Shown: positions 3,058 through 46,981 of the stretch, piece after piece
How positions within the stretch are numbered: position 1 is the stretch's first letter
How the letters are laid out: each line of letters begins with the position of its first letter
Sequence record: MN453779.2
Strand: one strand, 5' to 3'
DNA: 64,000 bases
Program-made: the position numbers and the translations under genes
Notes under the pieces: model-generated
What the model saw: only the letters and a program-made list of their open reading frames with translations
Told to the model about the DNA's origin: nothing
Database searches by the model: none

Positions 3058-3554
3058 TTATGACTGATCAATTCAGTCAGTTTTCTCCAAAGGACAGTTA
3101 CTCCCAATCAGGGAGTAACTTTTCTGGAACTAACTGGCGCGCAGAACAACTTCCTACTGAAGCAGTAAAGAATAGTGATGAATTGGAATATAAACACCAC
3201 CCTAAAGAGTGCCAATACCCATTGATTAATAAACACTTTACTGTTCAGATCAATACTAAAGTAGAATTGGAGTTTCTAAGTAACGTTGAACAGAATACTC
3301 CTTTTGATTATAAGAAATTTGGATTATCTATTCCAAGACAACTCATGACATTATTGAATCAATATAATATCGGAGATGGTTGGAGTTGTAATCCACAACG
3401 TGGTAACAGTGTTGCTGCTTTCTCCCTACTCTATTTTGGAGTAGGTTCCTTAACCCCAACACAATACCAGTTGAATCGTAAAACTCCTCTAGTGGCAATT
3501 GTGGAAGTCGATACGTTTAACGGTAAAGAGGTGTTAAGTCTTGCTGTGAGATAA
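3054..3554 (+). CDS. hypothetical protein
   Basis: 166 aa, GTGA overlap with upstream stop; ATG at 3060 also possible. Confidence 0.6.
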   Translation: MIMTDQFSQFSPKDSYSQSGSNFSGTNWRAEQLPTEAVKNSDELEYKHHPKECQYPLINKHFTVQINTKVELEFLSNVEQNTPFDYKKFGLSIPRQLMTLLNQYNIGDGWSCNPQRGNSVAAFSLLYFGVGSLTPTQYQLNRKTPLVAIVEVDTFNGKEVLSLAVR

Positions 3555-22837: not shown

Positions 22838-23344
22838 ATGCAATTAGTTATTTCTGCTTTTCCAGGTTGTGGTAAATCAAGTATCTTTAATAATGGAGAG
22901 GAATATAATTTAGTTCCTGTCCCGTTTAATAAGGATTTGCTTGAATTAGGTAAGATCGAGCGTAAGGAAGGTCAAACTTTAGTTTTTGATTCCGATAGCT
23001 CTAATTTTGATAAAACACATTTCCCAGGTAACTATATTAGTTATATTAAGTCACTATTGGAAATGTTTGACGATGTTGTTATCTTTGTTTCGTCTCATAT
23101 TGGCGTAAGGGAGGCTCTTGCTAAAGCCGGCGTGGAATATGTTCTTGTATATCCAGAACCTTATTTGAAACAACAATATCTTGATCGCTATGTAAAACGC
23201 GGTTCTCCGGATGGGTTTATTAAACTACTGGATGAAAAGTGGCTGGAATGGCTAGATTCTTGCGAGAAAGACGAAAATGCTATTAGTCATTATAAATTGT
23301 CCAATGGTCAGTATTTAAGTGACCTGTTTGAAGACTTTAAATAA
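22838..23344 (+). CDS. P-loop NTPase / nucleotide-kinase-like protein
   Basis: ISAFPGCGKS Walker A. Confidence 0.7.
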   Translation: MQLVISAFPGCGKSSIFNNGEEYNLVPVPFNKDLLELGKIERKEGQTLVFDSDSSNFDKTHFPGNYISYIKSLLEMFDDVVIFVSSHIGVREALAKAGVEYVLVYPEPYLKQQYLDRYVKRGSPDGFIKLLDEKWLEWLDSCEKDENAISHYKLSNGQYLSDLFEDFK

Positions 23345-23445: not shown

Positions 23446-23766
23446 ATGTCAAACTCTATGAAAATCCATCTGACCTTTAAATCGGACATTACTGAACGTC
23501 AGGTTAAAGACTTGTCTACAGCTTTAGATGGTTCTGATAATGTTCGGATTTACGATTACACCAAACGCACTATCGTAGTCATCATACTGGATCGTCAGAA
23601 AATTAATAATCAGATATTTGATCAACTGGCTAACGTTATGTGTTGTAAGGTTGTGACACAAACTGGTTGTGACGATCGTGGTGATAACATCTATGTTTTC
23701 GTATCTCCGTCCAGAACTATTGTTGATACCTCAGCTACTGCTAACGCTGTTCAGAAACTCTTTTAA
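23446..23766 (+). CDS. hypothetical protein
   Basis: 106 aa, AGGAG RBS. Confidence 0.65.
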   Translation: MSNSMKIHLTFKSDITERQVKDLSTALDGSDNVRIYDYTKRTIVVIILDRQKINNQIFDQLANVMCCKVVTQTGCDDRGDNIYVFVSPSRTIVDTSATANAVQKLF

Positions 23767-24798: not shown

Positions 24799-25485
24799 AT
24801 GTTTAATGTTAGATTAATAGATTTTTGTTTCCACATCTGTCCAGAAAAGACATTTGGTGAAATGTGGAAGTTTGCTGAAGAGTTGTTTAAGATCAGAGAT
24901 GGTCTTGCTAACGGAACAGAGTACAATCCAATCATTGGAATAGTAGACGGTCAACAGATCATCTTGACTCCCATCCATACTAAAAACTCTATTACTTATA
25001 AGCTAGAACTAGGTTCTCTTGTTTGGGTTATTCACGATAACATTACTGGGGTACCTAACCAGGATTTTAGTAGAGAAATACTACGGTACATGGGTTGGCA
25101 TTTTAACGATAAGACACTGTACGATATATTTAATCTTGAAGACAGGCTGCGCAAACCTGAATTCGCGGATCTTTATGCTCTTTGGATTAAACTTATTGAA
25201 GAGTTCAATATTAATAATGAAGGATTTGAAGAAAGTAATATTTGGCTAGGCCCCGAGAAATGTATTAGGATAATTAAACCTAGACCAGCTACACGTCCTG
25301 ACGAAATCATCGGTAAAGTGGACATTATTAAAAATGGTGTCTTTGATAGTTTTGTATTCACTACCGACGGAATACCCTTTAAGAAAGCCATGGAACTTAG
25401 AACTACCTGGATTAGACAGGAAGGTAGTTTTATTACACAACCAACTCTTAGTTCTAATCCAGATTTTACTCAAAAGGAATTTTAA
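24799..25485 (+). CDS. hypothetical protein
   Basis: 228 aa, AGGAG RBS. Confidence 0.65.
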   Translation: MFNVRLIDFCFHICPEKTFGEMWKFAEELFKIRDGLANGTEYNPIIGIVDGQQIILTPIHTKNSITYKLELGSLVWVIHDNITGVPNQDFSREILRYMGWHFNDKTLYDIFNLEDRLRKPEFADLYALWIKLIEEFNINNEGFEESNIWLGPEKCIRIIKPRPATRPDEIIGKVDIIKNGVFDSFVFTTDGIPFKKAMELRTTWIRQEGSFITQPTLSSNPDFTQKEF

Positions 25486-25486
25486 T

Positions 25487-26161
25487 ATGGATATGTTCCA
25501 AGAAAAACTTAAATCTTACGAAGAAGTACCTGAAGGTGTTACTTATCGTAGACAGATGGTCAGAGACCCCTCAATTGGTCAGGAACAGATAGTCGATCAA
25601 TTGATCGTGTACAAGCACGGTTTCTTTATCAATTGCAATAAGACAGTTGTGGAGATTTGTCCTACAGTTAGCTCATATTCAGGTGGTTTTTCGCACTTAG
25701 GAAATAACGTAAAGATAGGTGTTAAGTTACTTATCAATGGTGACGAAGTTTTATCCATTAAAGAAGTACAACATGTAGACGACTGGATCGACTATAAGAA
25801 CATCAAAATGATTGACTTCGTTGCAAACATGGTTGTTCTTGGGTATTTAAAACCGTGGTATGAACTCGATAAAGTCGTCGGATTGATGTATCCTTGTTTT
25901 CAATCGTTAGGCATTGTTTATCATCCCAGTGTTGAAAATTGGGTGGATATCCCATTTGACGATGGTGATATTCAAAAATCTATAGATGGTAAGGTTTATT
26001 GGTGTATGAGAAAATACACCAACGGTTATTATGTAACCAAGTATATGTCATCAAGTTACCATAAACACTTGGAATGTCCTGGTAGTAAAGTGGTAATTAG
26101 TGAGAAAACTAAAGAAGCACTCCCTGTGACTTTACAGGAGGCTTTAGACGCCTTGTCATAA
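25487..26161 (+). CDS. hypothetical protein
   Basis: Start reassigned to ATG 25487 (AAGGA RBS, directly after upstream stop). Confidence 0.65.
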   Translation: MDMFQEKLKSYEEVPEGVTYRRQMVRDPSIGQEQIVDQLIVYKHGFFINCNKTVVEICPTVSSYSGGFSHLGNNVKIGVKLLINGDEVLSIKEVQHVDDWIDYKNIKMIDFVANMVVLGYLKPWYELDKVVGLMYPCFQSLGIVYHPSVENWVDIPFDDGDIQKSIDGKVYWCMRKYTNGYYVTKYMSSSYHKHLECPGSKVVISEKTKEALPVTLQEALDALS

Positions 26162-26171
26162 GGAGTTTGTA

Positions 26172-26300
26172 ATGGAAGATTGTAAAGAGACTAAAAGTTG
26201 GATTTGTTACACTGACGGTTCAAAATTGGGTGAAAGTACCACCGATGGAGGACCTGGTGGGTGGAAAGTTATTGTTCAGTATAATATAAAGACTTTATGA
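26172..26300 (+). pseudogene. orphan N-terminal fragment of RNase H (42 codons)
   Basis: AAGGAG RBS then MEDCKETKSWICYTDGSKLGESTTDGGPGGW, homologous to WVCYTDGS...GGSGAW of the full gene. Confidence 0.8.
26291..26299 (+). promoter_or_regulatory. putative late promoter for HNH
   Basis: GACTTTATG, matches GAYYTTATG motif; overlaps orphan stop. Confidence 0.45.
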
Positions 26301-26315
26301 CCGGGGTATATAATA

Positions 26316-27800
26316 ATGTCTATTAAAACACTAACTGAAATCCTTGGTCTTTCTCTTGAATTGAAAGATTATGAAGACAGAGTACAGAAAAGATACGATT
26401 ACATTCAAGAACAATTGAAGCTTGATCCTGAGTTTGTAGCTTATGACTATTTGGAATACTGGGATGGTCGTGCCGATATTCATTATATCATTGATAAGTA
26501 TGTTATTGACACTAAAGGTAATTATTACTTAAATAATAACGGCATTTGTTCTCCACTAAAGGATAAAGAGAATAAGTGGGGAAAGTGGGTAGCTATAAAC
26601 CAGAAATGCGAATATTTTCAAACCCGCCGCATTGTTGCTAGTATGTATGTGCCTAAATCAGATAGTATCTTATTTATTCCATATTGGAAATTGGACGTAA
26701 AATATAAGGATGGGGATAGTAAAAATAAAAACTTTGACAACCTTGACTGGAGTGAAATAAAAGAAGGAAAAGATTATTTAGCTAGTTTACCTAAAACTTT
26801 AACTGAAATCCTTGGGTTAAAGTATGATGAAACAATGAGTTACGAAGAACGTGTTCAAAAGCGTTACAATTACGTTAAAGAGCAATTGGAACTAGATCCT
26901 AACTATGAAGGTTGGGATGTGGTGGAATTTATTAGCGGTGGAATTTATCTAAAACACTTAGTGTGTTTTAATTACCTAATTTCTACCTCTGGTAGGGTTT
27001 TAACGACCGATAAAGACGAAAGAGGATATAAAATACTAACTGGAACGGTTGGTACGGATGAGTATAAGTTCCAAAATTTTCGCGTGAATAAAGATAGACA
27101 TCGTTGTACTATACACCGTGCAGTATCTTCCACGTTTATTTACAAACCACCGCACTACCAACAAAAATTAAATCGCCTGGTTGTTAACCACAAAGATTTA
27201 GACAAATTAAATAATCATTTTACTAATCTTGAATGGTGTACTACTAAAGAGAATGTCCGACATAGAGTTTTGGGATATCAGGCGACGAATATCTATTTCA
27301 ATACAATCTTCGAAGGGACAGTAGAAATAGATTGTAAATATAAAGGTGTTAAGTTTAAAGTTTTTGGCGGTGAAGGTTTGGAGAGTATAGGGTTAGGACC
27401 TAATACTTTAAGTGGGGTATTTACAAAAGGATATGAACTTTCATTTGGGTGTAGCTGGAAGATAATAAACCAAGAAGAAGCTGATAGACTTCCGGATATT
27501 CCTGAGTTTATTAAGGGCAAACTTCTTAATGATAGAAGTTTTATGGACTACCGCATTAAACCTACGAAGGGAACTGTTGTTAAGGACTGTGAATTTAAGG
27601 ACCTGGAGTTTGTTATATTCGGTAGGAGAGAGTTTGTTGGATCTGGTTTTGACCAAGGGTCTGTAGGTAAGGCAATGAAAACTGATACTTTACACCAGGG
27701 GTGTAAGTGGGAGTTTATTACTAGAGATGAGGCTGAACTGTTACCAAGAGGACTAACTAAAGAACAAATGAAAACTATTATTACTAAAAGATGGCCTTAA
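26316..27800 (+). CDS. HNH homing endonuclease with duplicated N-terminal module
   Basis: VNHKDLDKLNNHFTNLEWCT HNH motif; KTLTEILGL...RVQKRY module occurs twice; two C-terminal repeats. Confidence 0.85.
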   Translation: MSIKTLTEILGLSLELKDYEDRVQKRYDYIQEQLKLDPEFVAYDYLEYWDGRADIHYIIDKYVIDTKGNYYLNNNGICSPLKDKENKWGKWVAINQKCEYFQTRRIVASMYVPKSDSILFIPYWKLDVKYKDGDSKNKNFDNLDWSEIKEGKDYLASLPKTLTEILGLKYDETMSYEERVQKRYNYVKEQLELDPNYEGWDVVEFISGGIYLKHLVCFNYLISTSGRVLTTDKDERGYKILTGTVGTDEYKFQNFRVNKDRHRCTIHRAVSSTFIYKPPHYQQKLNRLVVNHKDLDKLNNHFTNLEWCTTKENVRHRVLGYQATNIYFNTIFEGTVEIDCKYKGVKFKVFGGEGLESIGLGPNTLSGVFTKGYELSFGCSWKIINQEEADRLPDIPEFIKGKLLNDRSFMDYRIKPTKGTVVKDCEFKDLEFVIFGRREFVGSGFDQGSVGKAMKTDTLHQGCKWEFITRDEAELLPRGLTKEQMKTIITKRWP

Positions 27801-27853
27801 ACCAATTTGGTCATACCCAAGGTGTAATAGTTTCATTGTCATTGAGGAAAGGT

Positions 27854-28396
27854 ATGGAAAACATGCAATGGGTTTGTTACACAGATGGGAGTTGTCTTGA
27901 CCAAAACAGTGGAACAGGAGGAAGTGGCGCGTGGGCATTTCATGCTATTTTTGGAGAATCGATAGTAGAGAAGTCTTGTGGGTATTTTAAGACTACTAAT
28001 AATAGGATGGAGATATTAGCCATTATCTCTTTTCTAGAGGAGTTTCAAGAGCCCACTAAGGTTACTATACGAAGCGATTCTCAATACACCATTGATGCCG
28101 TTACTAAATGGATCTATGGTTGGATTAAGAATGACTGGGTAACTTCTCAGGGACAACCTGTAAAGAACAAAGACTTATTTGAACGATTGTTTAAATTGGT
28201 AAAGTTTCATACAGTGAAGTTTGAAAAAGTAAAAGCTCACTCTGGCATTATTGGTAATGAACGTGCTGATGAATTAGCCAAGGAAGCAGCAGGAAATCCA
28301 ACATTAGTTGATGAAGGTTATATACCTCCAGATCCTAATGAGGTTAAACCTGTGGTTGTAAAAAAACCTTGGTGGGTAAAATATAAAAAGAAATAA
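27854..28396 (+). CDS. rnhA: ribonuclease HI
   Basis: YTDGS, TTNNRMEILA, IRSDSQY, VKNKDL, KVKAHSGIIGNERADELA. Confidence 0.93.
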   Translation: MENMQWVCYTDGSCLDQNSGTGGSGAWAFHAIFGESIVEKSCGYFKTTNNRMEILAIISFLEEFQEPTKVTIRSDSQYTIDAVTKWIYGWIKNDWVTSQGQPVKNKDLFERLFKLVKFHTVKFEKVKAHSGIIGNERADELAKEAAGNPTLVDEGYIPPDPNEVKPVVVKKPWWVKYKKK

Positions 28397-28397
28397 A

Positions 28398-28427
28398 GTT
28401 CACCCAACTCTATTGAGTTGGGTGAAC
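28398..28427. terminator. 13-bp stem hairpin
   Basis: gttcacccaactc-tatt-gagttgggtgaac. Confidence 0.75.
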
Positions 28428-28435
28428 AATTCAGA

Positions 28436-28458
28436 ATAATTTATTTATTTTATATTAC
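28436..28458 (+). promoter_or_regulatory. putative early promoter facing tailspike A 3' end
   Basis: ATAATTT-atttattt-TATATTAC. Confidence 0.6.
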
Positions 28459-28603
28459 ATTGACCAAGTAAATGACATTGGTAGAACACGATCGTATATT
28501 CTATTACAACTTCAATAAATACAAACCCGGCGAAGCGGGGTAGTGTTTCACTCAAAAACTGGACCCGGGAGTGTTATTGCCCCGTCAATTACACCCGCAT
28601 TGA

Positions 28604-28705
28604 ATTGTACCTGAGCCGTACCGGCCATTGACAGTATTTTGGGTGACGTATTGGGTAGGTTCAACCAGAGCAAGCGCTAATAAGGATTCGTTGATACGAC
28701 GGTGA
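28604..28705 (+). pseudogene. relic C-terminus of small membrane (holin-like) gene
   Basis: ...VFWVTYWVGSTRASANKDSLIRR*; 18/20 aa identical to right-arm copy. Confidence 0.55.
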
Positions 28706-28711
28706 AAAGAA

Positions 28712-28734
28712 AAAGCCCCTGTGAAAGGGGCTTT
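28712..28734. terminator. bidirectional Rho-independent terminator of tailspike A
   Basis: aaagcccct-gtgaa-aggggcttt with A/U tracts. Confidence 0.85.
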
Positions 28735-28767
28735 ATTTTGCGGAGCATCTTCTGGTTGTGCCACTAG

Positions 28768-30732
28768 TCAAACATGTCGCACCACGCCCGTACAGCTATA
28801 TGTCTGCACCGAGCTGTAGAAACTGTCAAACGTCAGGCGAATAAACCCGCCATTATTGGACACAGCAACGGTTTTATCAAACCCATCATGTGACTTGGCT
28901 TTGTCGCCATAAATGTTACCAAACAGTTCATAAGCGCTTAACTCATCTGCTATCGTTATGCGGTACGCTAACAGAGCTGCGTGCTTATTGAATGCTATCT
29001 TTGTGTCTATGATTATAGAGAAAGTGGTGCCGGCTGTTTTTGAGTGCTCACAGAACGCCACCGTCCCTGCTTTAGGCCCCCCTGCCTTACCCTCGTAATT
29101 GAACGGCACTAGAGTGTTACCATGCACCTGAGTCTTAATCATCCCAAACCCAGTGGCCGAATCGAAAAGAATGTTTTCATGCCGAACTCTGGATTTCCCG
29201 CCAAGCGCGTAACCAGCCGGGATTGATGGGTAGCCGTTATTGGCGATGGGGACAGGGGCTATCTCGACCTCACCTAAATCGTTGTAGTTATCCAGCCCTG
29301 AGATTACATTTGGACAAGCAAGGAATCGGTTATTTTCATAAACATGAATTCGGGAGCCATTCGTTCCTCTGTTTATAGCTGTTCCGCATTTGTTGAAGAA
29401 GCAGTTATCAAAGGTCACATCATATTTGAAACCGCCAGCGGACAGGTCCACACCGATCCCAGAATCCCCCTCTAGGTAACACGTATCGAGCTTGATAGGG
29501 CCAGTCTCGCCGGAAATGATAATCCCGTTTGTGCACCCCTCAGCCGAGCAGCAATACAGAGTCTGGCCGTTAGCCCCGCTCGATATTTCAATCCCAGTGA
29601 CACGCCCACTTACAAACACCGATTCAATCGCGCAGACGTTGACAAAATCACGGAAGTAAAAAGCCGGCAACGTGGTTCCCCCTCCACTACCGCGAGAGAA
29701 CAGGTTAACGAAACGCCCGTAGAAACAGCGAGCAGCATAAACAGGTTGAGTACAGTTGGTGAAGTAGATGTTACTAAGCTCACTGTTGAACAGAAAGTTG
29801 TATAGATTAAATACCTTACCACAATCTCTAATACTGGCATTTTTTACAGCAGCCTGCCGAACCAGAATTGTTTCTGGTGGGGCACCGATGTTGCTTATGA
29901 CAGCGCCGCCGGATAAATACCCGCTCTGGAAAACGTCTACAGAACTCCCCAGACCCGGGCCAATAATTTCAGAGTTGCAGAAGTCTAGCTCTACGCAAGA
30001 TGGTACGATCACCGTTTCCGTCAACTTGTAAGATCTATATGGTGCGATTATGCGCCCACCGCCAGCAAGCGCGACATACAGTATCGCGGAGACGAATGCG
30101 GGTGAGTCATTAGTTGTGCCATCCCCCGCTGCGCCAAAGTCGAGGACGTTAAATATAAGCCTGGAGCGCAGTAGCTCACCGCTGCGATCAACAAACCCAC
30201 CGCTCGCTGGGTCAGTACCAGCGGCAACTACACCAGCAGGCCCGGAGAATACCTTACCAGTGCGCTCTTGCAGCAACACATCATTACTATTTACAAGAAC
30301 ACCACCTTGTTCAAAACTCCCTTCAACAAGATCATATCCTGCTTCTTGATAAGTTCTACGAAGTGCTTCTCTTGCTATTACACGTTCATCCCTAGTAACA
30401 ATACCCCATCCTTTCTTACCACCTGGGGTAGGAGAACTATTAGCTGGAACTACATAAGGTAATTTACCATTCCAACTGTACCAATATCCATCTGTTGGAT
30501 AAAAAACACATTTATCACGATCACCGATGCCTAAAGTGCCACCATTAACAAAGTCAAATCCTGCTGGTTTGAACCCAACATCTTTCAAAGCCTGTTGTAC
30601 AGTTTTGTGTTGTTTACCGAAACGATCCTGCCACAATGCAGCTGGGGAATTCATCGCATAATCAAACGAAATAGCGTTATCTTGTAAGTCTTCAGTTGCT
30701 GAAGACCCAATAGGGTTTTGTGTGAAAAACAT
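28768..30732 (-). CDS. tailspike A, polysaccharide depolymerase-type receptor-binding protein
   Basis: N-terminal anchor plus TSP/gp66-like docking modules; NVLDFGAAGDGTTNDSPAF pectate-lyase-3-like start; beta-helix; GC-rich C-terminal region. Confidence 0.85.
   Translation of the reverse strand: MFFTQNPIGSSATEDLQDNAISFDYAMNSPAALWQDRFGKQHKTVQQALKDVGFKPAGFDFVNGGTLGIGDRDKCVFYPTDGYWYSWNGKLPYVVPANSSPTPGGKKGWGIVTRDERVIAREALRRTYQEAGYDLVEGSFEQGGVLVNSNDVLLQERTGKVFSGPAGVVAAGTDPASGGFVDRSGELLRSRLIFNVLDFGAAGDGTTNDSPAFVSAILYVALAGGGRIIAPYRSYKLTETVIVPSCVELDFCNSEIIGPGLGSSVDVFQSGYLSGGAVISNIGAPPETILVRQAAVKNASIRDCGKVFNLYNFLFNSELSNIYFTNCTQPVYAARCFYGRFVNLFSRGSGGGTTLPAFYFRDFVNVCAIESVFVSGRVTGIEISSGANGQTLYCCSAEGCTNGIIISGETGPIKLDTCYLEGDSGIGVDLSAGGFKYDVTFDNCFFNKCGTAINRGTNGSRIHVYENNRFLACPNVISGLDNYNDLGEVEIAPVPIANNGYPSIPAGYALGGKSRVRHENILFDSATGFGMIKTQVHGNTLVPFNYEGKAGGPKAGTVAFCEHSKTAGTTFSIIIDTKIAFNKHAALLAYRITIADELSAYELFGNIYGDKAKSHDGFDKTVAVSNNGGFIRLTFDSFYSSVQTYSCTGVVRHV
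30187..30375 (-). repeat. shared tailspike junction module, copy A
   Basis: REALRRTY...DVLLQERTG...GFVD; exact blocks gaagcacttcgtagaac and tgctgcaagagcgcac in all three spikes. Confidence 0.9.
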
Positions 30733-42795: not shown

Positions 42796-43188
42796 ATGCA
42801 TAATACTGGGAATGACTTAGAATCGAACGATATTCTTGACTTTGAAGACAATACCGTCAATCTTGACATTCTAATGAATGCCGATCAAGAGTACTGGATA
42901 GACCGTCTTGGTAATAAGCGACCCACCATTGATTACGCTTTGCGTATGGCTGGGTTCACACCTGCTGGGTTTGATTTCACCACAGGTGGTGTTTTAAAGA
43001 ATGGTGATCGAAATAAATGCGTATTTAACCAAGCTGATCAAACTTGGTATAGTTGGTCAGGCGATCTTCCTTATAATGTAATTGCTGGTAGTACGCCTGG
43101 GGAAGGTTGGAAAGTACAAGTCACTCCTTCTGTTATTACCAAACTTCAAGAATTGGAAACTAGAATAACTGTTTTGGAAAATAAATAA
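42796..43188 (+). CDS. anchor-only tailspike paralog (no receptor-binding domain)
   Basis: Homologous to N-termini of spikes A and C (DRLGNKRPTID..AGFDF..GG.L...DRNK..YSW.G.LP), then short coiled coil. Confidence 0.8.
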   Translation: MHNTGNDLESNDILDFEDNTVNLDILMNADQEYWIDRLGNKRPTIDYALRMAGFTPAGFDFTTGGVLKNGDRNKCVFNQADQTWYSWSGDLPYNVIAGSTPGEGWKVQVTPSVITKLQELETRITVLENK

Positions 43189-43699: not shown

Positions 43700-44746
43700 A
43701 TGATAAATGTTTATTTCTCGGAATTACCTAAAACTTTAACTGAAATATTAGAGTTAAAGTATGATGAAACAATGTCTTATGAGGAAAGAGTTCAAAAGCG
43801 TTACAATTATATTAAAGAACAATTGGAAAAGAATCCAGGGTATGAAGGATGGGATTATCTTGAAAATGTTAAATATGGATTAAAGTTTGAACACTTAATC
43901 ACCTTTGAATATATGATTTCTACTAGAGGTAGAATTTTAACTTTGTTTATGCAGGAAGGAATATATAAGGTACTTAAAGGTAAGTTATCCAATTATGGTT
44001 ATAGGGAACAAATCATATCAATTAATAAGTTGTCATATGGTTGTAAACCGCATAGAACATTATGCTCTACCTTCATACCTAAACCAAGTCATTATAAACA
44101 AGGAATAAATCGTTTAGTGGTTAATCATAAAGATTTAATTAAGTTGAATAATCACTTTACTAATCTTGAATGGTGTACTAATCAAGAGAATACCAGACAT
44201 CAATTAATAGAATATGGGAATAGAAATACTTACTTTAATTCAATATTCCAAGGAACCATAGAACTTGATTGTAAATATAAAGGCGTTAAGTTTAAAGTAT
44301 ATGGAACTGAAGGTCTAGAAGACATTGGGTTGGATGGTAATGCTTTGAGTAAAGTCTTTACCAAGGGTTACGAGCTATCTTTCGGGTGTAGTTGGAAATA
44401 TATAACCCAAGAAGAAGCTGATAAACTACCGGATATTCCTGAATTTATTAAGAATAAGTTTCTTAATGATAGAAACTATATGAATCATCGTATTAAACCT
44501 TTAAAAGGAACAGTTGTTAGGGAATGTGAATATAAAGGTTTAGAGTTTGTTATTTACGGTAAACAGGAATTGCAAAGCTTTGATATTAATCAAGGTAATG
44601 TTTCGGTTTCTATTGTTACTGGAAAGGTCATACACAGTTGTTTGTGGGAATATATTACTAGAGACGAAGCTGAACTATTGCAAAGGGGTTTAACTAAAGA
44701 GCAACAAAAAGTTATTGTTACTAAGAGAGGGCCTAATAAGAAGTAA
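43700..44746 (+). CDS. HNH homing endonuclease (paralog of 26316..27800 second module)
   Basis: VNHKDLIKLNNHFTNLEWCT; long shared nucleotide blocks with 26787-27790. Confidence 0.85.
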   Translation: MINVYFSELPKTLTEILELKYDETMSYEERVQKRYNYIKEQLEKNPGYEGWDYLENVKYGLKFEHLITFEYMISTRGRILTLFMQEGIYKVLKGKLSNYGYREQIISINKLSYGCKPHRTLCSTFIPKPSHYKQGINRLVVNHKDLIKLNNHFTNLEWCTNQENTRHQLIEYGNRNTYFNSIFQGTIELDCKYKGVKFKVYGTEGLEDIGLDGNALSKVFTKGYELSFGCSWKYITQEEADKLPDIPEFIKNKFLNDRNYMNHRIKPLKGTVVRECEYKGLEFVIYGKQELQSFDINQGNVSVSIVTGKVIHSCLWEYITRDEAELLQRGLTKEQQKVIVTKRGPNKK

Positions 44747-44803: not shown

Positions 44804-44812
44804 GATTTTATG
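44804..44812 (+). promoter_or_regulatory. putative late promoter for tailspike C
   Basis: GATTTTATG; its ATG was taken as start by the ORF track. Confidence 0.6.
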
Positions 44813-44842
44813 TACCTTAAGATAAACAATAGGAATACTGTT

Positions 44843-46981
44843 ATGACTAGATTTAATACAGGTAATGTCATTCCATCGCTAGCCGAAGAAGATTTTTATG
44901 ATAACTCCATGGCTTTAGATGAAGCCATGAATAGCACTGATCCAACTTGGAGAGATAGATTTGGAGTTGAGAAGCCTACGATCGACGCAGCTTTGAAATC
45001 TGCCGGGTTTATGCCGGCTGGATTTGACTTTGTAACTGGCGGGACTCTTCAACCTGGAGATCGCAATAAAGCTGTTTACAATCCTGCTCCTAACGGCGAT
45101 AATAATTGGTATCGTTGGAATGGTGCATTTCCGAAAGAAATTGCTGCTAATAGTCAACCTAATCCCAAAGATGAAAATAATTGGGTATTGGCACATTTTA
45201 GAATTGGAATAGTCGAAAAGGAAGCACTTCGTAGAACATATTTGGAAGCAGGTTATAATCTTGTTAACGGTAGCTTTGAACAAGGTGGGACGTTAGTAAA
45301 TAGTAATGATGTGCTGCTGCAAGAGCGCACAGGGAAAGTATTCACCGGCCCTGCGGGTATAGTTGCCGCCGGAACGAATCCGGCGAGCGGCGGGTTTGTT
45401 GATGTGTCGCCATTCGTATTGAAGACTGAGCCGCCACTGATAGCAAAAACAGGTTCATTCTCATCTGGTGGGCGTGCGGAATCTATGAAATCTGCGCTTC
45501 TTTCTTCAGACGGTTACTACTACACACCGAGAACTGGTGTTATCACAGCGGCTCCAGGATCATCTCCTAATTCTATGTGGGTCTGTGTGGGTCTGCTTAA
45601 CGGAGCGCCCATAGACGACATGCTAAACTGGCTTGATGGTCGCCCGCATCTAAATGCTTTCATTGCTGCTCGCGACAGCAAGTCAATTCGTGGCGGCGGG
45701 GTGGTCACTTTCCCTGCTGGCGATTACACGTTTGCTGATGAATTCGTGTGCGTAGATTACGTCAAGTTTGTGGGTGAAGATCGTAGCAAGTGTCGCATAT
45801 TTGGTGCAGCGGGTTCAGGAGCGGGAAAGGCTGTAGTGAGAGCTTGCAAGTCGCCTGTCGGTTCTGCTGACATACCGGAATATCTATCTTATTCGGGGTT
45901 TAGTAACTGCACAATTAACGGCAACGCAACTTGGGATGTTGGCCTTTACGTTCGCCACTGTACAAACGAATCTGTTTTCGATAACGTTACAGCGCAGAAC
46001 TGTAAAAAGGCTAACTCAATTTTTATCGGCGTCTTTTATGTTAGTGCCAAAAATCACGTAAGCCGAGACGCACGTGACTTGGGTGCTGTCATCGGTAAGA
46101 AGATTTTCAGCGAAGGCGGGCTTCGTGAGGTTAATGCTTCAGCTTTCAATAACCTCAGAGGCAATTACGCAGGACTTGACGACGCCTATGATCCGACCAC
46201 AAACCCATATGCAGGTGCCTGCATAACAATATGGACCGCTAACAGTTGCGCATTTGATTATGTTGGTGCCGAGAATGCTTACGGTGCTGGTGCTATTATC
46301 CGCAAAGGGATAAACAGCACAATCCCGAACTTGTATGTCGAGTCCAATGGGAAGGGCACTGCTGCTGTGGATAAGATCGGAGCCAGGATCATTGCTGCAG
46401 ATTTCCCTTCACTGATCATTGGTTCCCTCTTTGCAACAAGACAGCAGAAGATTTATCTGGAGGGGAGCTCACTGCTGCAAGTTGGCGAAATCTACTCTGA
46501 GTCTTTTGCAAATGGAATTTTCATGGGCACAGGCAAAGTGCTGTTGATGAATGGCCACAGCGCCAATAATTACATTGGGGCAGATCAAGCATTCATTAAT
46601 AACATTGAAACTAAACGCATTGCTCAGTTTGGGAATGTCCCTTTCACCAACTTCGCGAGCCTAGACTCCACAGCTGTTATTTTTGGCGAGGCAATGACAA
46701 ATGTCCAAGTGGTGATGGTGCCTAGAGTAACTTTAACCACGGCAGACCCGATAGTCATTGGGCTGTCAAATTCTCTATCCGGGGGGCAAGTGCTAGAATT
46801 TGGGACATCGTTTACTGCGGGAGTGCCTATTACCAAAACGTTCAGCAAAGTTTCTAAAGGTGCTGGAAGACTTACTCACCGGTCAAATTACCTGCCATCT
46901 ACAACAACAAACTTTGCAATGGACGTGTTCATTATTCAGTACGTTTGTGATTACCAGGCTATTTATAACAAGTGGTTTTAA
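44843..46981 (+). CDS. tailspike C, depolymerase-type receptor-binding protein
   Basis: ATG 44843 after AGGA; anchor like A; GGGVVTFPAGDY beta-helix start; GC-rich C-terminal region. Confidence 0.85.
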   Translation: MTRFNTGNVIPSLAEEDFYDNSMALDEAMNSTDPTWRDRFGVEKPTIDAALKSAGFMPAGFDFVTGGTLQPGDRNKAVYNPAPNGDNNWYRWNGAFPKEIAANSQPNPKDENNWVLAHFRIGIVEKEALRRTYLEAGYNLVNGSFEQGGTLVNSNDVLLQERTGKVFTGPAGIVAAGTNPASGGFVDVSPFVLKTEPPLIAKTGSFSSGGRAESMKSALLSSDGYYYTPRTGVITAAPGSSPNSMWVCVGLLNGAPIDDMLNWLDGRPHLNAFIAARDSKSIRGGGVVTFPAGDYTFADEFVCVDYVKFVGEDRSKCRIFGAAGSGAGKAVVRACKSPVGSADIPEYLSYSGFSNCTINGNATWDVGLYVRHCTNESVFDNVTAQNCKKANSIFIGVFYVSAKNHVSRDARDLGAVIGKKIFSEGGLREVNASAFNNLRGNYAGLDDAYDPTTNPYAGACITIWTANSCAFDYVGAENAYGAGAIIRKGINSTIPNLYVESNGKGTAAVDKIGARIIAADFPSLIIGSLFATRQQKIYLEGSSLLQVGEIYSESFANGIFMGTGKVLLMNGHSANNYIGADQAFINNIETKRIAQFGNVPFTNFASLDSTAVIFGEAMTNVQVVMVPRVTLTTADPIVIGLSNSLSGGQVLEFGTSFTAGVPITKTFSKVSKGAGRLTHRSNYLPSTTTNFAMDVFIIQYVCDYQAIYNKWF
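45221..45403 (+). repeat. shared tailspike junction module, copy C
   Basis: gtaaatagtaatgatgtgYtgctgcaagagcgcac shared with A (1 mismatch). Confidence 0.9.

Follow-up and report, generated by a model that had tools for sequence, protein, structure and literature searches.

A homing endonuclease gene within rnhA of Aeromonas jumbo phages that probably brings a replacement start for the gene it interrupts

To our knowledge, homing endonuclease genes are thought to survive in essential or conserved genes only by means of introns or inteins and, rarely, by splitting the gene. The rnhA locus of Aeromonas phage PS2 points to another solution in phages, in which the element supplies a replacement start for the gene that it interrupts. 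The DNA analyzed is a stretch of 64,000 nt from sequence record MN453779.2 (hereafter the window, to which positions without another label refer). At the locus, a short orphan open reading frame (ORF) that matches the start of RNase H is followed by an HNH endonuclease gene and by a complete RNase HI gene with a different start. Based on comparisons with related sequences, we consider it very probable that positions 26265 to about 27936 represent an active intron-less homing element inside rnhA with a built-in 5' rescue segment, operating by the full mechanism set out below.

Among phage systems, the free-standing homing endonucleases of T4 (SegF, SegG, SegB, and MobE) resemble the PS2 element in having no intron or intein and in being present or absent at one site (PMC2988022; PMC2790892; PMC2330249). 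In the intronless homing of T4, a break is repaired from a co-infecting donor and adjacent donor sequence is transferred, while the donor carries a different allele of the neighboring target gene at the presumed site (PMC2988022; PMC2790892; PMC2330249). However, the T4 homing genes occupy intergenic positions or divide a gene into two functional parts, whereas the PS2 element is located inside an ORF, at codon 31/32. The PS2 element also differs from the T4 cases in bringing a substitute for the 5' gene end that has a ribosome-binding site (RBS) of its own, the resident 5' end being kept as the orphan and left arm, and in having flanks with almost no co-conversion. A review of the T4 systems covers intergenic, intron, intein, and gene-splitting arrangements and does not mention a duplicated gene end (PMC2988022), and a survey of ICP1 phages describes introns and "islands" of homing genes (PMC10448857). 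The mobE-split nrdA of phage Aeh1 is similar to the PS2 locus in that a homing gene lies inside a conserved Aeromonas phage coding sequence and the gene function is kept (PMC2988022; PMC3045599). In Aeh1, however, the nrdA fragments are complementary and must reassemble, whereas PS2 has a complete downstream gene and a redundant upstream fragment.

The closest described design is that of the mobile ORFs (mORFs) of fungal mitochondria, which are known from atp6 of Allomyces macrogynus, from atp6, atp9, cox2, and nad3 of Glomus, from atp9 of Rhizopus, and from cox2 of Mortierella (PMC3630166). The original prediction for this locus, made from the DNA sequence without database searches, had named fungal mitochondrial homing elements with partial gene duplication as a parallel, and the literature supports this choice. 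As in PS2, an endonuclease ORF together with a diverged foreign gene end is inserted in a gene, and the native end is left as a duplicate (PMC3630166). In the fungal mORFs, this native end is unexpressed and the foreign end groups separately from the host lineage; it is the 3' (C-terminal) end that is replaced, in frame with the upstream body, and the enzymes belong to the LAGLIDADG or GIY-YIG families (PMC3630166). The PS2 element is the mirror image of this design, with a replaced 5' end, a new RBS and ATG, an HNH enzyme, and a double-stranded DNA phage as the host genome. The supply of a new RBS and ATG is possible because bacterial-type mRNAs are polycistronic. The PS2 element works like the fungal mORF family and is not a member of the described set.

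For homing genes with a duplicated or replacement gene end, no phage precedent was found in the literature; the coverage omits most subscription journals, and this absence is not proof. Engineered home-and-rescue and cleave-and-rescue drives link a nuclease to a recoded, cleavage-resistant part-copy of its target, such that carriers keep the function and naive alleles are cut. These drives are synthetic CRISPR constructs in insects and usually recode the 3' part of the gene. In contrast, the PS2 element is natural, protein-guided, and carried by a phage, and its resistance to cleavage is a presumption only.

Positions 25300-29000 of the window match Aeromonas phage PS2 (MN453779.2) with 100% identity; this jumbo phage has a genome of 240 kb and belongs to the genus Ferozepurvirus. 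The features of the locus are as follows, in which names such as L012 are our handles for sequences compared with PS2.

26172..26264, plus strand: native rnhA 5' end, codons 1-31 up to the Trp codon, with an RBS upstream; 29/31 amino acids (aa) identical to phage pAEv1810 and 90/93 nt identical to L012.
26265..26300, plus strand: tail of the orphan ORF, unrelated to rnhA (KVIVQYNIKTL and stop), read from element DNA.
26265..27936, plus strand: putative mobile cassette of ~1.67 kb, with spacer, HNH gene, intergenic RBS, and replacement rnhA codons 1-27/28.
26265..26315, plus strand: A+T-rich spacer with TATAAT-like hexamers, conserved with the L008 spacer.
26316..27800, plus strand: HNH homing endonuclease gene PS2_0150, 494 aa (Pfam HNH_3, E 1e-7).
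27801..27853, plus strand: intergenic region of the cassette, which provides the replacement rnhA start with its RBS GAGGAAAGG; the same sequence without differences is present in PS1, L008, and L024/25.
27854..27936, plus strand: element-borne replacement rnhA 5' end (MENMQW...GGSGAW, then Ala).
27854..28396, plus strand: complete RNase HI gene PS2_0151 (Pfam RNase_H), chimeric, with its 5' end from the cassette and its body from the resident gene.
27937..28396, plus strand: resident (recipient-lineage) rnhA body, the putative right homology arm, 6.1% divergent from PS1.
28398..28427, no strand assigned: hairpin with a 13-bp stem 3' of rnhA, called on the minus strand with its T-run pointing toward rnhA; given for context only.

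The complete orphan ORF (26172..26300, 42 aa) starts with MEDCKETKSWICYTDGSKLGESTTDGGPGGW and is preceded by TAAGGAGTTTGTAATG, in which AAGGAG lies 7 nt 5' of the ATG, while the full-length RNase H starts with MENMQWVCYTDGSCLDQNSGTGGSGAW. In GenBank (MN453779.2), the orphan is labeled as the hypothetical gene PS2_0149, and the next two genes as HNH (PS2_0150) and RNase HI (PS2_0151). PS2_0151 fills the whole Pfam RNase_H model (E 1e-40, profile positions 3-140/141), its translation shows the motifs CYTDGS, NNRMEI, IRSDSQY, AHSG, and GNERADE, and the enzyme is presumably functional. The match of the orphan to rnhA is far above chance, because it is a continuous homology to an orthologous gene and not a motif match. 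The original prediction had read this region as a 42-codon ORF with a strong RBS that encodes an RNase H N-terminus, with homology ending at the Trp codon that closes at 26264, followed by an AT-rich promoter-like stretch, the HNH gene, and a complete RNase H with a different N-terminus. The ORF is confirmed as an RNase H start by the pAEv1810 and L012 matches, its limit by alignment, and the two downstream genes by the Pfam families HNH_3 and RNase_H. For the promoter-like stretch, the composition was correct, since the spacer at 26265-26315 (51 nt) has ~75% A+T and two TATAAT-like hexamers, but no promoter was called in it by a scan for the sigma-70 consensus, from which the promoter rules of PS2 may differ. 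It is possible that this spacer carries element-borne expression signals.

Stop codons at 26298-26300 and 27798-27800 keep the three ORFs apart, and an intein-associated endonuclease was ruled out by these breaks in the frame. The orphan and the HNH ORF share a reading frame in PS2, with a TGA and 15 nt between them; this is probably a coincidence, because the orphan and HNH gene of L008 are not in frame. A scan for terminator patterns found a weak hairpin (GCGTGGGCATTTCATGC) with a T-run at 27929-27945, exactly at the right junction of the cassette, which may be due to chance. The G+C content is 35.3% in the cassette and 35-36% in its neighbors, and base composition is thus uninformative on a foreign origin.

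In the phage collection, seven records match the PS2 region. PS1 carries an HNH gene at rnhA, and pAEv1810, ACP1, and AVP1 have one 184-codon rnhA without an HNH gene there. When metagenomic sequences are included, the HNH gene is present at the site in PS2, PS1, L008, L020/21, L022/23, and L024/25, and is absent, with the site intact, from pAEv1810, AVP1, ACP1, L011, L012, and L014. The orphan, whose occurrence in HNH-less relatives the original prediction had named as counter-evidence, is absent from all six of the latter, in which rnhA starts 10 nt past the PS2_0148 homologue. Orphan codons 1-31 are identical to the RNase H start of pAEv1810 at 29/31 residues, and the remaining pAEv1810 protein matches the PS2 body. 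The closest empty site was found in the metagenomic contig L012 (protein P0003). Its upstream gene end and rnhA codons 1-31 are identical to PS2 at 242/246 nt, the three differences within the orphan part (90/93 nt identical) are all synonymous, and its rnhA body from codon 32 differs from that of PS1 at 4/462 nt. The uninterrupted rnhA of both L012 and pAEv1810 equals orphan codons 1-31 joined to PS2 rnhA from codon 28, which is the reconstruction that had been proposed as a check.

The limits of the inserted unit were read from these alignments. The left-hand similarity to rnhA extends exactly to the end of the Trp codon TGG at 26262-26264; on the right, the last base that separates PS1 from the empty allele of L012 is 27936 (GCA versus GGA, the codon after Trp). 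The unit of ~1.67 kb comprises the 51-nt spacer, the HNH gene, 53 nt with the RBS, and 27-28 replacement codons. Between PS1 and PS2, there are 0 differences in 1562 nt (26393-27954), followed by 28 in 462 nt (Fisher p 6e-19). Further carriers were sought by a protein search of metagenomes, after which their contigs were compared. The cassette occurs in five lineages (PS2, PS1, L008, L022/23, and L024/25). Its last 383 nt are 100% identical in PS2, PS1, L008, and L024/25 and 97.9% identical in L022/23, whereas the next 460 nt, which belong to the rnhA body, are only 82.7-93.9% identical between the five lineages (for PS2 versus L008, the contrast has p 1e-21). The rnhA body of PS2 is 6.1% divergent from that of PS1 and 13-17% divergent from those of the other cassette-bearing lineages. 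In the comparison of PS2 with L008, identity is 85-100% in the cassette, 35-63% in the left flank (PS2_0148 homologue), and ~85% in the right flank. At the right junction, all five lineages read GGCGCGTGG followed immediately by GCATTTCA and diverge within the next 8 nt. Left junctions were readable in two divergent lineages, the other contigs ending inside the HNH gene. Taken together, the identity of PS1 and PS2 that gives way to 6% divergence and the same endpoint in five lineages agree with the earlier proposal that the HNH gene travels with the replacement 5' end, and indicate that the cassette is a circulating element now spreading among related phages, not a scar private to PS2. For a donor or source of the HNH gene, protein scans found nothing close in IMG/VR and only paralogues with 54-56% identity and one 1.1-kb fragment in JGI; exact-pattern scans gave no match for the full spacer in IMG/VR and none for the conserved spacer core in JGI metagenomes.

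The composition of the orphans differs between lineages. L008 belongs to a clearly different clade, in which the native rnhA type starts with MKSPEW..., as in the HNH-less proteins P0005-P0008 (P0005 on contig L011). The layout of L008 is the same as that of PS2, with an orphan that extends to the same Trp codon, a homologous spacer, a 494-codon HNH gene, and rnhA with the identical new start. The L008 orphan reads MKSPEWICYTDGSRLGESGTDGGPGGW, followed by RS and a stop, and is of the native type of its own clade as represented by P0006-P0008. The redundant native 5' terminus kept in PS2 is of the L012/pAEv1810 type. The orphan tail differs between PS2 and L008 through a 1-nt spacer indel, and the peptide past the Trp is not conserved. 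HNH-less rnhA alleles were found within both clades (L012 and L011). A single old, vertically inherited accident is excluded, because the clades carry orphans of their own types at the same codon and HNH-less alleles occur in both. Each invasion thus appears to create a new lineage-specific orphan, made of rnhA codons 1-31 of the lineage's own type, in line with the earlier suggestion that the native 5' end is left behind as an orphan. Beyond that suggestion, the orphan would double as the left homology arm, and its peptide seems to have no function in itself.

PS1 represents a rearranged state of the locus. The first 35 residues of its HNH protein are the start of the gene known as PS2_0144 or ACP1_0215, and the join lies at 10 nt of microhomology, TACGATTACA, a sequence shared by PS2_0144 and the PS2 HNH gene.

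L002 (PS1) 2397-2510, corresponding to window 23446-23560 and 26392-26401: PS1 HNH fusion.

PS1 looks like the product of a single ~2.85-kb deletion that removed five genes (0144-0148) along with the orphan and spacer and codons 1-26 of the HNH gene. Despite this deletion, the remainder of its cassette is 100% identical to that of PS2. The alternative that PS1 shows the donor or ancestral layout, with an intergenic HNH gene after PS1_0146, was rejected given that the HNH start is fused from a PS2_0144-type gene at the microhomology.

These comparisons also bear on a simpler explanation, namely that a free-standing intergenic HNH gene came to lie beside a diverged rnhA and that the orphan is a one-off scar, produced by a single illegitimate join on the left, inherited vertically, and without a role in mobility. 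Most paralogues of the HNH gene are plain intergenic insertions (e.g., PS2_0172 at 43700-44746, and L013), PS1 demonstrates that illegitimate microhomology-mediated joins occur at the rnhA locus, and an event of this kind is probably how the element first arose. However, a one-off scar predicts equal divergence of the cassette and its flanks, whereas the cassette is 100% identical and the flanks differ by 6-17% on the right and by ~50% on the left. In addition, two clades with orphans of their own types that end at the same codon require repeated entry at the site, and HNH-less alleles occur in the same clades (L012 and L011). We therefore regard the scar as improbable and favor a mobile element.

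The HNH protein has an unusual composition. Residues 154-320 of PS2_0150 form a NUMOD4 + HNH_3 module with an intact catalytic motif (VNHKD...NNH...NLEW...KENVRH; Pfam match above the gathering score). Residues 1-153 are a degenerate NUMOD4-HNH copy that is 33% identical to the active module (E 2e-21); in this copy, VNHKD has become VKYKD with the loss of the catalytic His, the ENxxH part is missing, and HNH_3 is matched only at E 0.19. In the window, the two module copies correspond to 26316-26774 and 26775-27275. Residues ~330-490 contain two C-terminal repeats that were confidently modeled by AlphaFold. The model as a whole was moderate (mean pLDDT 70, pTM 0.41, and nuclease cores <50) and was used only for these repeats and for the structural match. 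The sole significant structural match is I-HmuI of Bacillus phage SPO1 (1U3E; Foldseek E 3.7e-7, with a PDB sequence match at E 0.007), which shares the NUMOD4 + HNH_3 architecture. However, I-HmuI has 174 aa and is encoded by a group I intron, whereas PS2_0150 has 494 aa, an extra degenerate N-terminal module, two C-terminal repeats, and no intron. The dN/dS between PS2 and L008 is 0.15-0.16 in both modules, and the whole HNH protein, the dead copy included, is therefore under purifying selection. Most paralogues of PS2_0150 (~330-350 aa) have a single module.

The relationship to I-HmuI raises the alternative that the two rnhA parts are bridged at the RNA or protein level, either as exons of a group I/II intron or as split RNase H pieces like the mobE-split nrdA of Aeh1. 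HNH genes of the I-HmuI family are typically intron-encoded, and the fold of PS2_0150 matches I-HmuI. Furthermore, introns that contain HNH genes are spliced from essential genes of ICP1 phages (PMC10448857), and Aeromonas phages provide known cases of genes split by homing genes (PMC2988022). However, an Rfam scan of 25800-28800 found no intron at E<=1 and gave only two chance-level hits to miRNA families, on the downstream hairpin. The downstream rnhA is complete by itself, with an RBS, an ATG, and RNase_H positions 3-140/141, and the orphan duplicates residues rather than complementing them, as both encode WxCYTDGS...GGxGxW. The tail and frame of the orphan differ between PS2 and L008, and PS1 has no orphan and keeps the same rnhA. 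A group I/II intron or other RNA element was rejected based on the lack of an Rfam family and the separate start of the downstream gene, and cooperating pieces of the Aeh1 nrdA type were rejected based on redundancy in place of complementarity. Bridging of either kind is extremely unlikely, and the homing element with its own gene start is preferred.

The sequences at the insertion site suggest how the element may recognize its target. In the four naive alleles aligned, the site reads GGN GGN TGG before the junction and GGN TTT CA after it (protein GGWG), that is, GGNGGNTGG followed by GGN. At the right junction of all occupied alleles, it reads GGC GCG TGG and GCA TTT CA (protein GAWA), that is, GGCGCGTGG followed by GCA. 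In the occupied site, the left junction is split by the spacer and the right copy is consistently changed from GGNGGNTGGGGN to GGCGCGTGGGCA. These patterns fit a recognition or cleavage site that spans codons ~29-33, and they fit an immunity that derives both from splitting of the site and from two Gly-to-Ala recodings. The recoding of GGWG to GAWA probably confers immunity to cleavage.

The proposed homing cycle would begin with co-infection by a phage with an unoccupied rnhA, which the endonuclease would cut or nick near the codon-31/32 junction. The break would be repaired from the element-bearing genome, with recipient codons 1-31 pairing with the donor orphan as the left arm and the recipient rnhA body from codon 32 pairing with the donor rnhA body as the right arm, and everything between the two arms would be copied into the recipient. 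The native 5' end of the recipient would stay upstream as a new lineage-specific orphan, and its rnhA would be re-headed by the RBS and start codons of the cassette, such that RNase H stays intact. The change from GGWG to GAWA at the junction would make occupied genomes immune to the endonuclease. A nick and a double-strand cut would both be compatible with this cycle, because the co-conversion tracts are very short and I-HmuI nicks DNA. The central claim of the original prediction, that an intron-less homing element invaded rnhA and restored it, is consistent with the empty sites, the shared cassette, and the lack of an Rfam intron.

A further allele type was found among the HNH-less relatives. 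The rnhA of ACP1 and L014 is a mosaic of the native type (codons 1-16) and the GAWA type (codons 17-~32), the latter part being ~80% identical to the cassette.

L004 (ACP1) 3366-3470 and L014 2125-2230: mosaic rnhA segment.

This mosaic may derive from an older cassette that was lost by recombination between the direct 5'-end repeats, or from break repair off the replacement copy without copying of the HNH gene. A further possibility is that GAWA represents a long-standing polymorphism. The allele is nuclease-free and perhaps resistant.

Several points weigh against the proposed cycle. Co-conversion of the flanks is almost nil (boundaries of 0-8 nt), which is tighter than typical T4 homing tracts; the tight boundaries could partly result from later recombination or selection and not from each homing event. 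That the enzyme cleaves the naive site and that the GAWA site resists it are deductions from sequence only. The GAWA polymorphism could predate the element and not be an immunity adaptation, because GAWA-type segments occur in the HNH-less ACP1 and L014. Immunity may not be needed at all, because the relative I-HmuI is a nicking enzyme and acts on occupied DNA as well. The two divergent lineages that provide left junctions are only the PS2 type (including L020/21) and L008. Finally, PS1 shows that the orphan is dispensable once the element is in place, since it has lost the orphan together with the HNH start.

A further possibility, which is compatible with homing, is that the orphan is useful after insertion, either as a translated leader that drives the HNH gene by coupling or re-initiation or as an active 42-aa peptide. 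The native RBS and ATG of the orphan are intact, and its stop codon in PS2 lies 15 nt ahead of the HNH ATG. In a second element (L019; see below), the orphan stop overlaps the likely start of the HNH2 gene (ATGA). Free-standing homing genes also commonly rely on upstream host signals, according to a T4 review (PMC2988022). However, coupling is not conserved, as the L008 orphan ends 44 nt ahead of the HNH ATG in a different frame, and neither is the orphan tail. In PS1, the orphan was deleted and the HNH gene fused to the start of another gene. Moreover, the intactness of an orphan is uninformative on selection if each orphan is newly made from the recipient. A useful orphan thus appears rather unlikely, though less so than the scar or the bridged gene.

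Contigs L019 and L009 contain a different HNH gene in rnhA, of which the product is 25% identical to PS2_0150 and belongs to the same NUMOD4-HNH_3 family.

L019 4774-6543 and L009 1-1490: second HNH element.

This element is inserted after rnhA codon 12. Downstream of the PS2_0148 homologue, the native start comprises 12 codons (MKSPEWVCYSDG) and runs on into LSL and a stop codon, which overlaps the likely HNH2 start (ATGA, L019 4817-4820); a complete rnhA starting with MGELNW... in turn overlaps the HNH stop. L019 and L009 are 100% identical from the HNH end to rnhA codon 4 and ~88% identical beyond. The design of an orphan, an HNH gene, and a re-started rnhA is the same as in the first element.

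We tentatively propose, with somewhat less than even confidence, that these elements exemplify a third general route into the interiors of conserved genes. A recoded, self-immune 5' end with an RBS would be supplied, the displaced end would serve as a homology arm and expression leader, and this arrangement would have arisen at least twice in the rnhA of Aeromonas jumbo phages (HNH proteins 25% identical; insertions at codons 31/32 and 12). If so, such elements would be the natural equivalent of engineered home-and-rescue drives and may explain many of the short hypothetical ORFs located just upstream of phage homing genes. Public data hold several states of the putative homing cycle, namely naive (GGWG), occupied with lineage-specific orphans, occupied and then rearranged by deletion (PS1), and nuclease-free with GAWA and possibly resistant. 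Target choice, immunity by recoding, and loss of the element are directly testable with the culturable phages PS1, PS2, pAEv1810, AVP1, and ACP1 and a laboratory host. With regard to annotation, short ORFs labeled as hypothetical proteins ahead of homing genes may represent displaced starts of genes, and the neighboring gene may have obtained its first codons by horizontal transfer. The locus also offers gene-drive design a natural precedent for the logic of recoded rescue.

Other copies of this nuclease family are present elsewhere in these genomes. A tblastn search with the HNH protein found 9-10 places in PS2 and PS1 and 2-4 in ACP1, AVP1, and pAEv1810; PS1 and PS2, which are isolates from Indian river water on A. 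hydrophila ATCC 7966, appear unusually loaded with this family. The paralogue PS2_0172 (43700-44746) is 64% identical to residues 154-494 of PS2_0150 and lies between PS2_0171 and the tailspike gene PS2_0173. PS1 lacks PS2_0172 at the same site, indicating a plain intergenic presence/absence insertion without duplication. The tailspike locus was considered as a second case of an orphan, an HNH gene, and a complete gene (Tail_spike_N ORF of 130 aa at 42796-43188, HNH gene at 43700-44746, and tailspike gene at 44810-46981) and was rejected; the 130-aa ORF is a normal gene, because PS1 has this gene and its neighbor without the HNH gene and L013 has the same gene. Finally, as a further presence/absence difference near this locus, a 168-codon gene that follows the DNA ligase gene in PS1, PS2, ACP1, and AVP1 is missing from pAEv1810 (L001 (pAEv1810) 539-640 compared with L004 (ACP1) 32-538; window 22838-23344).

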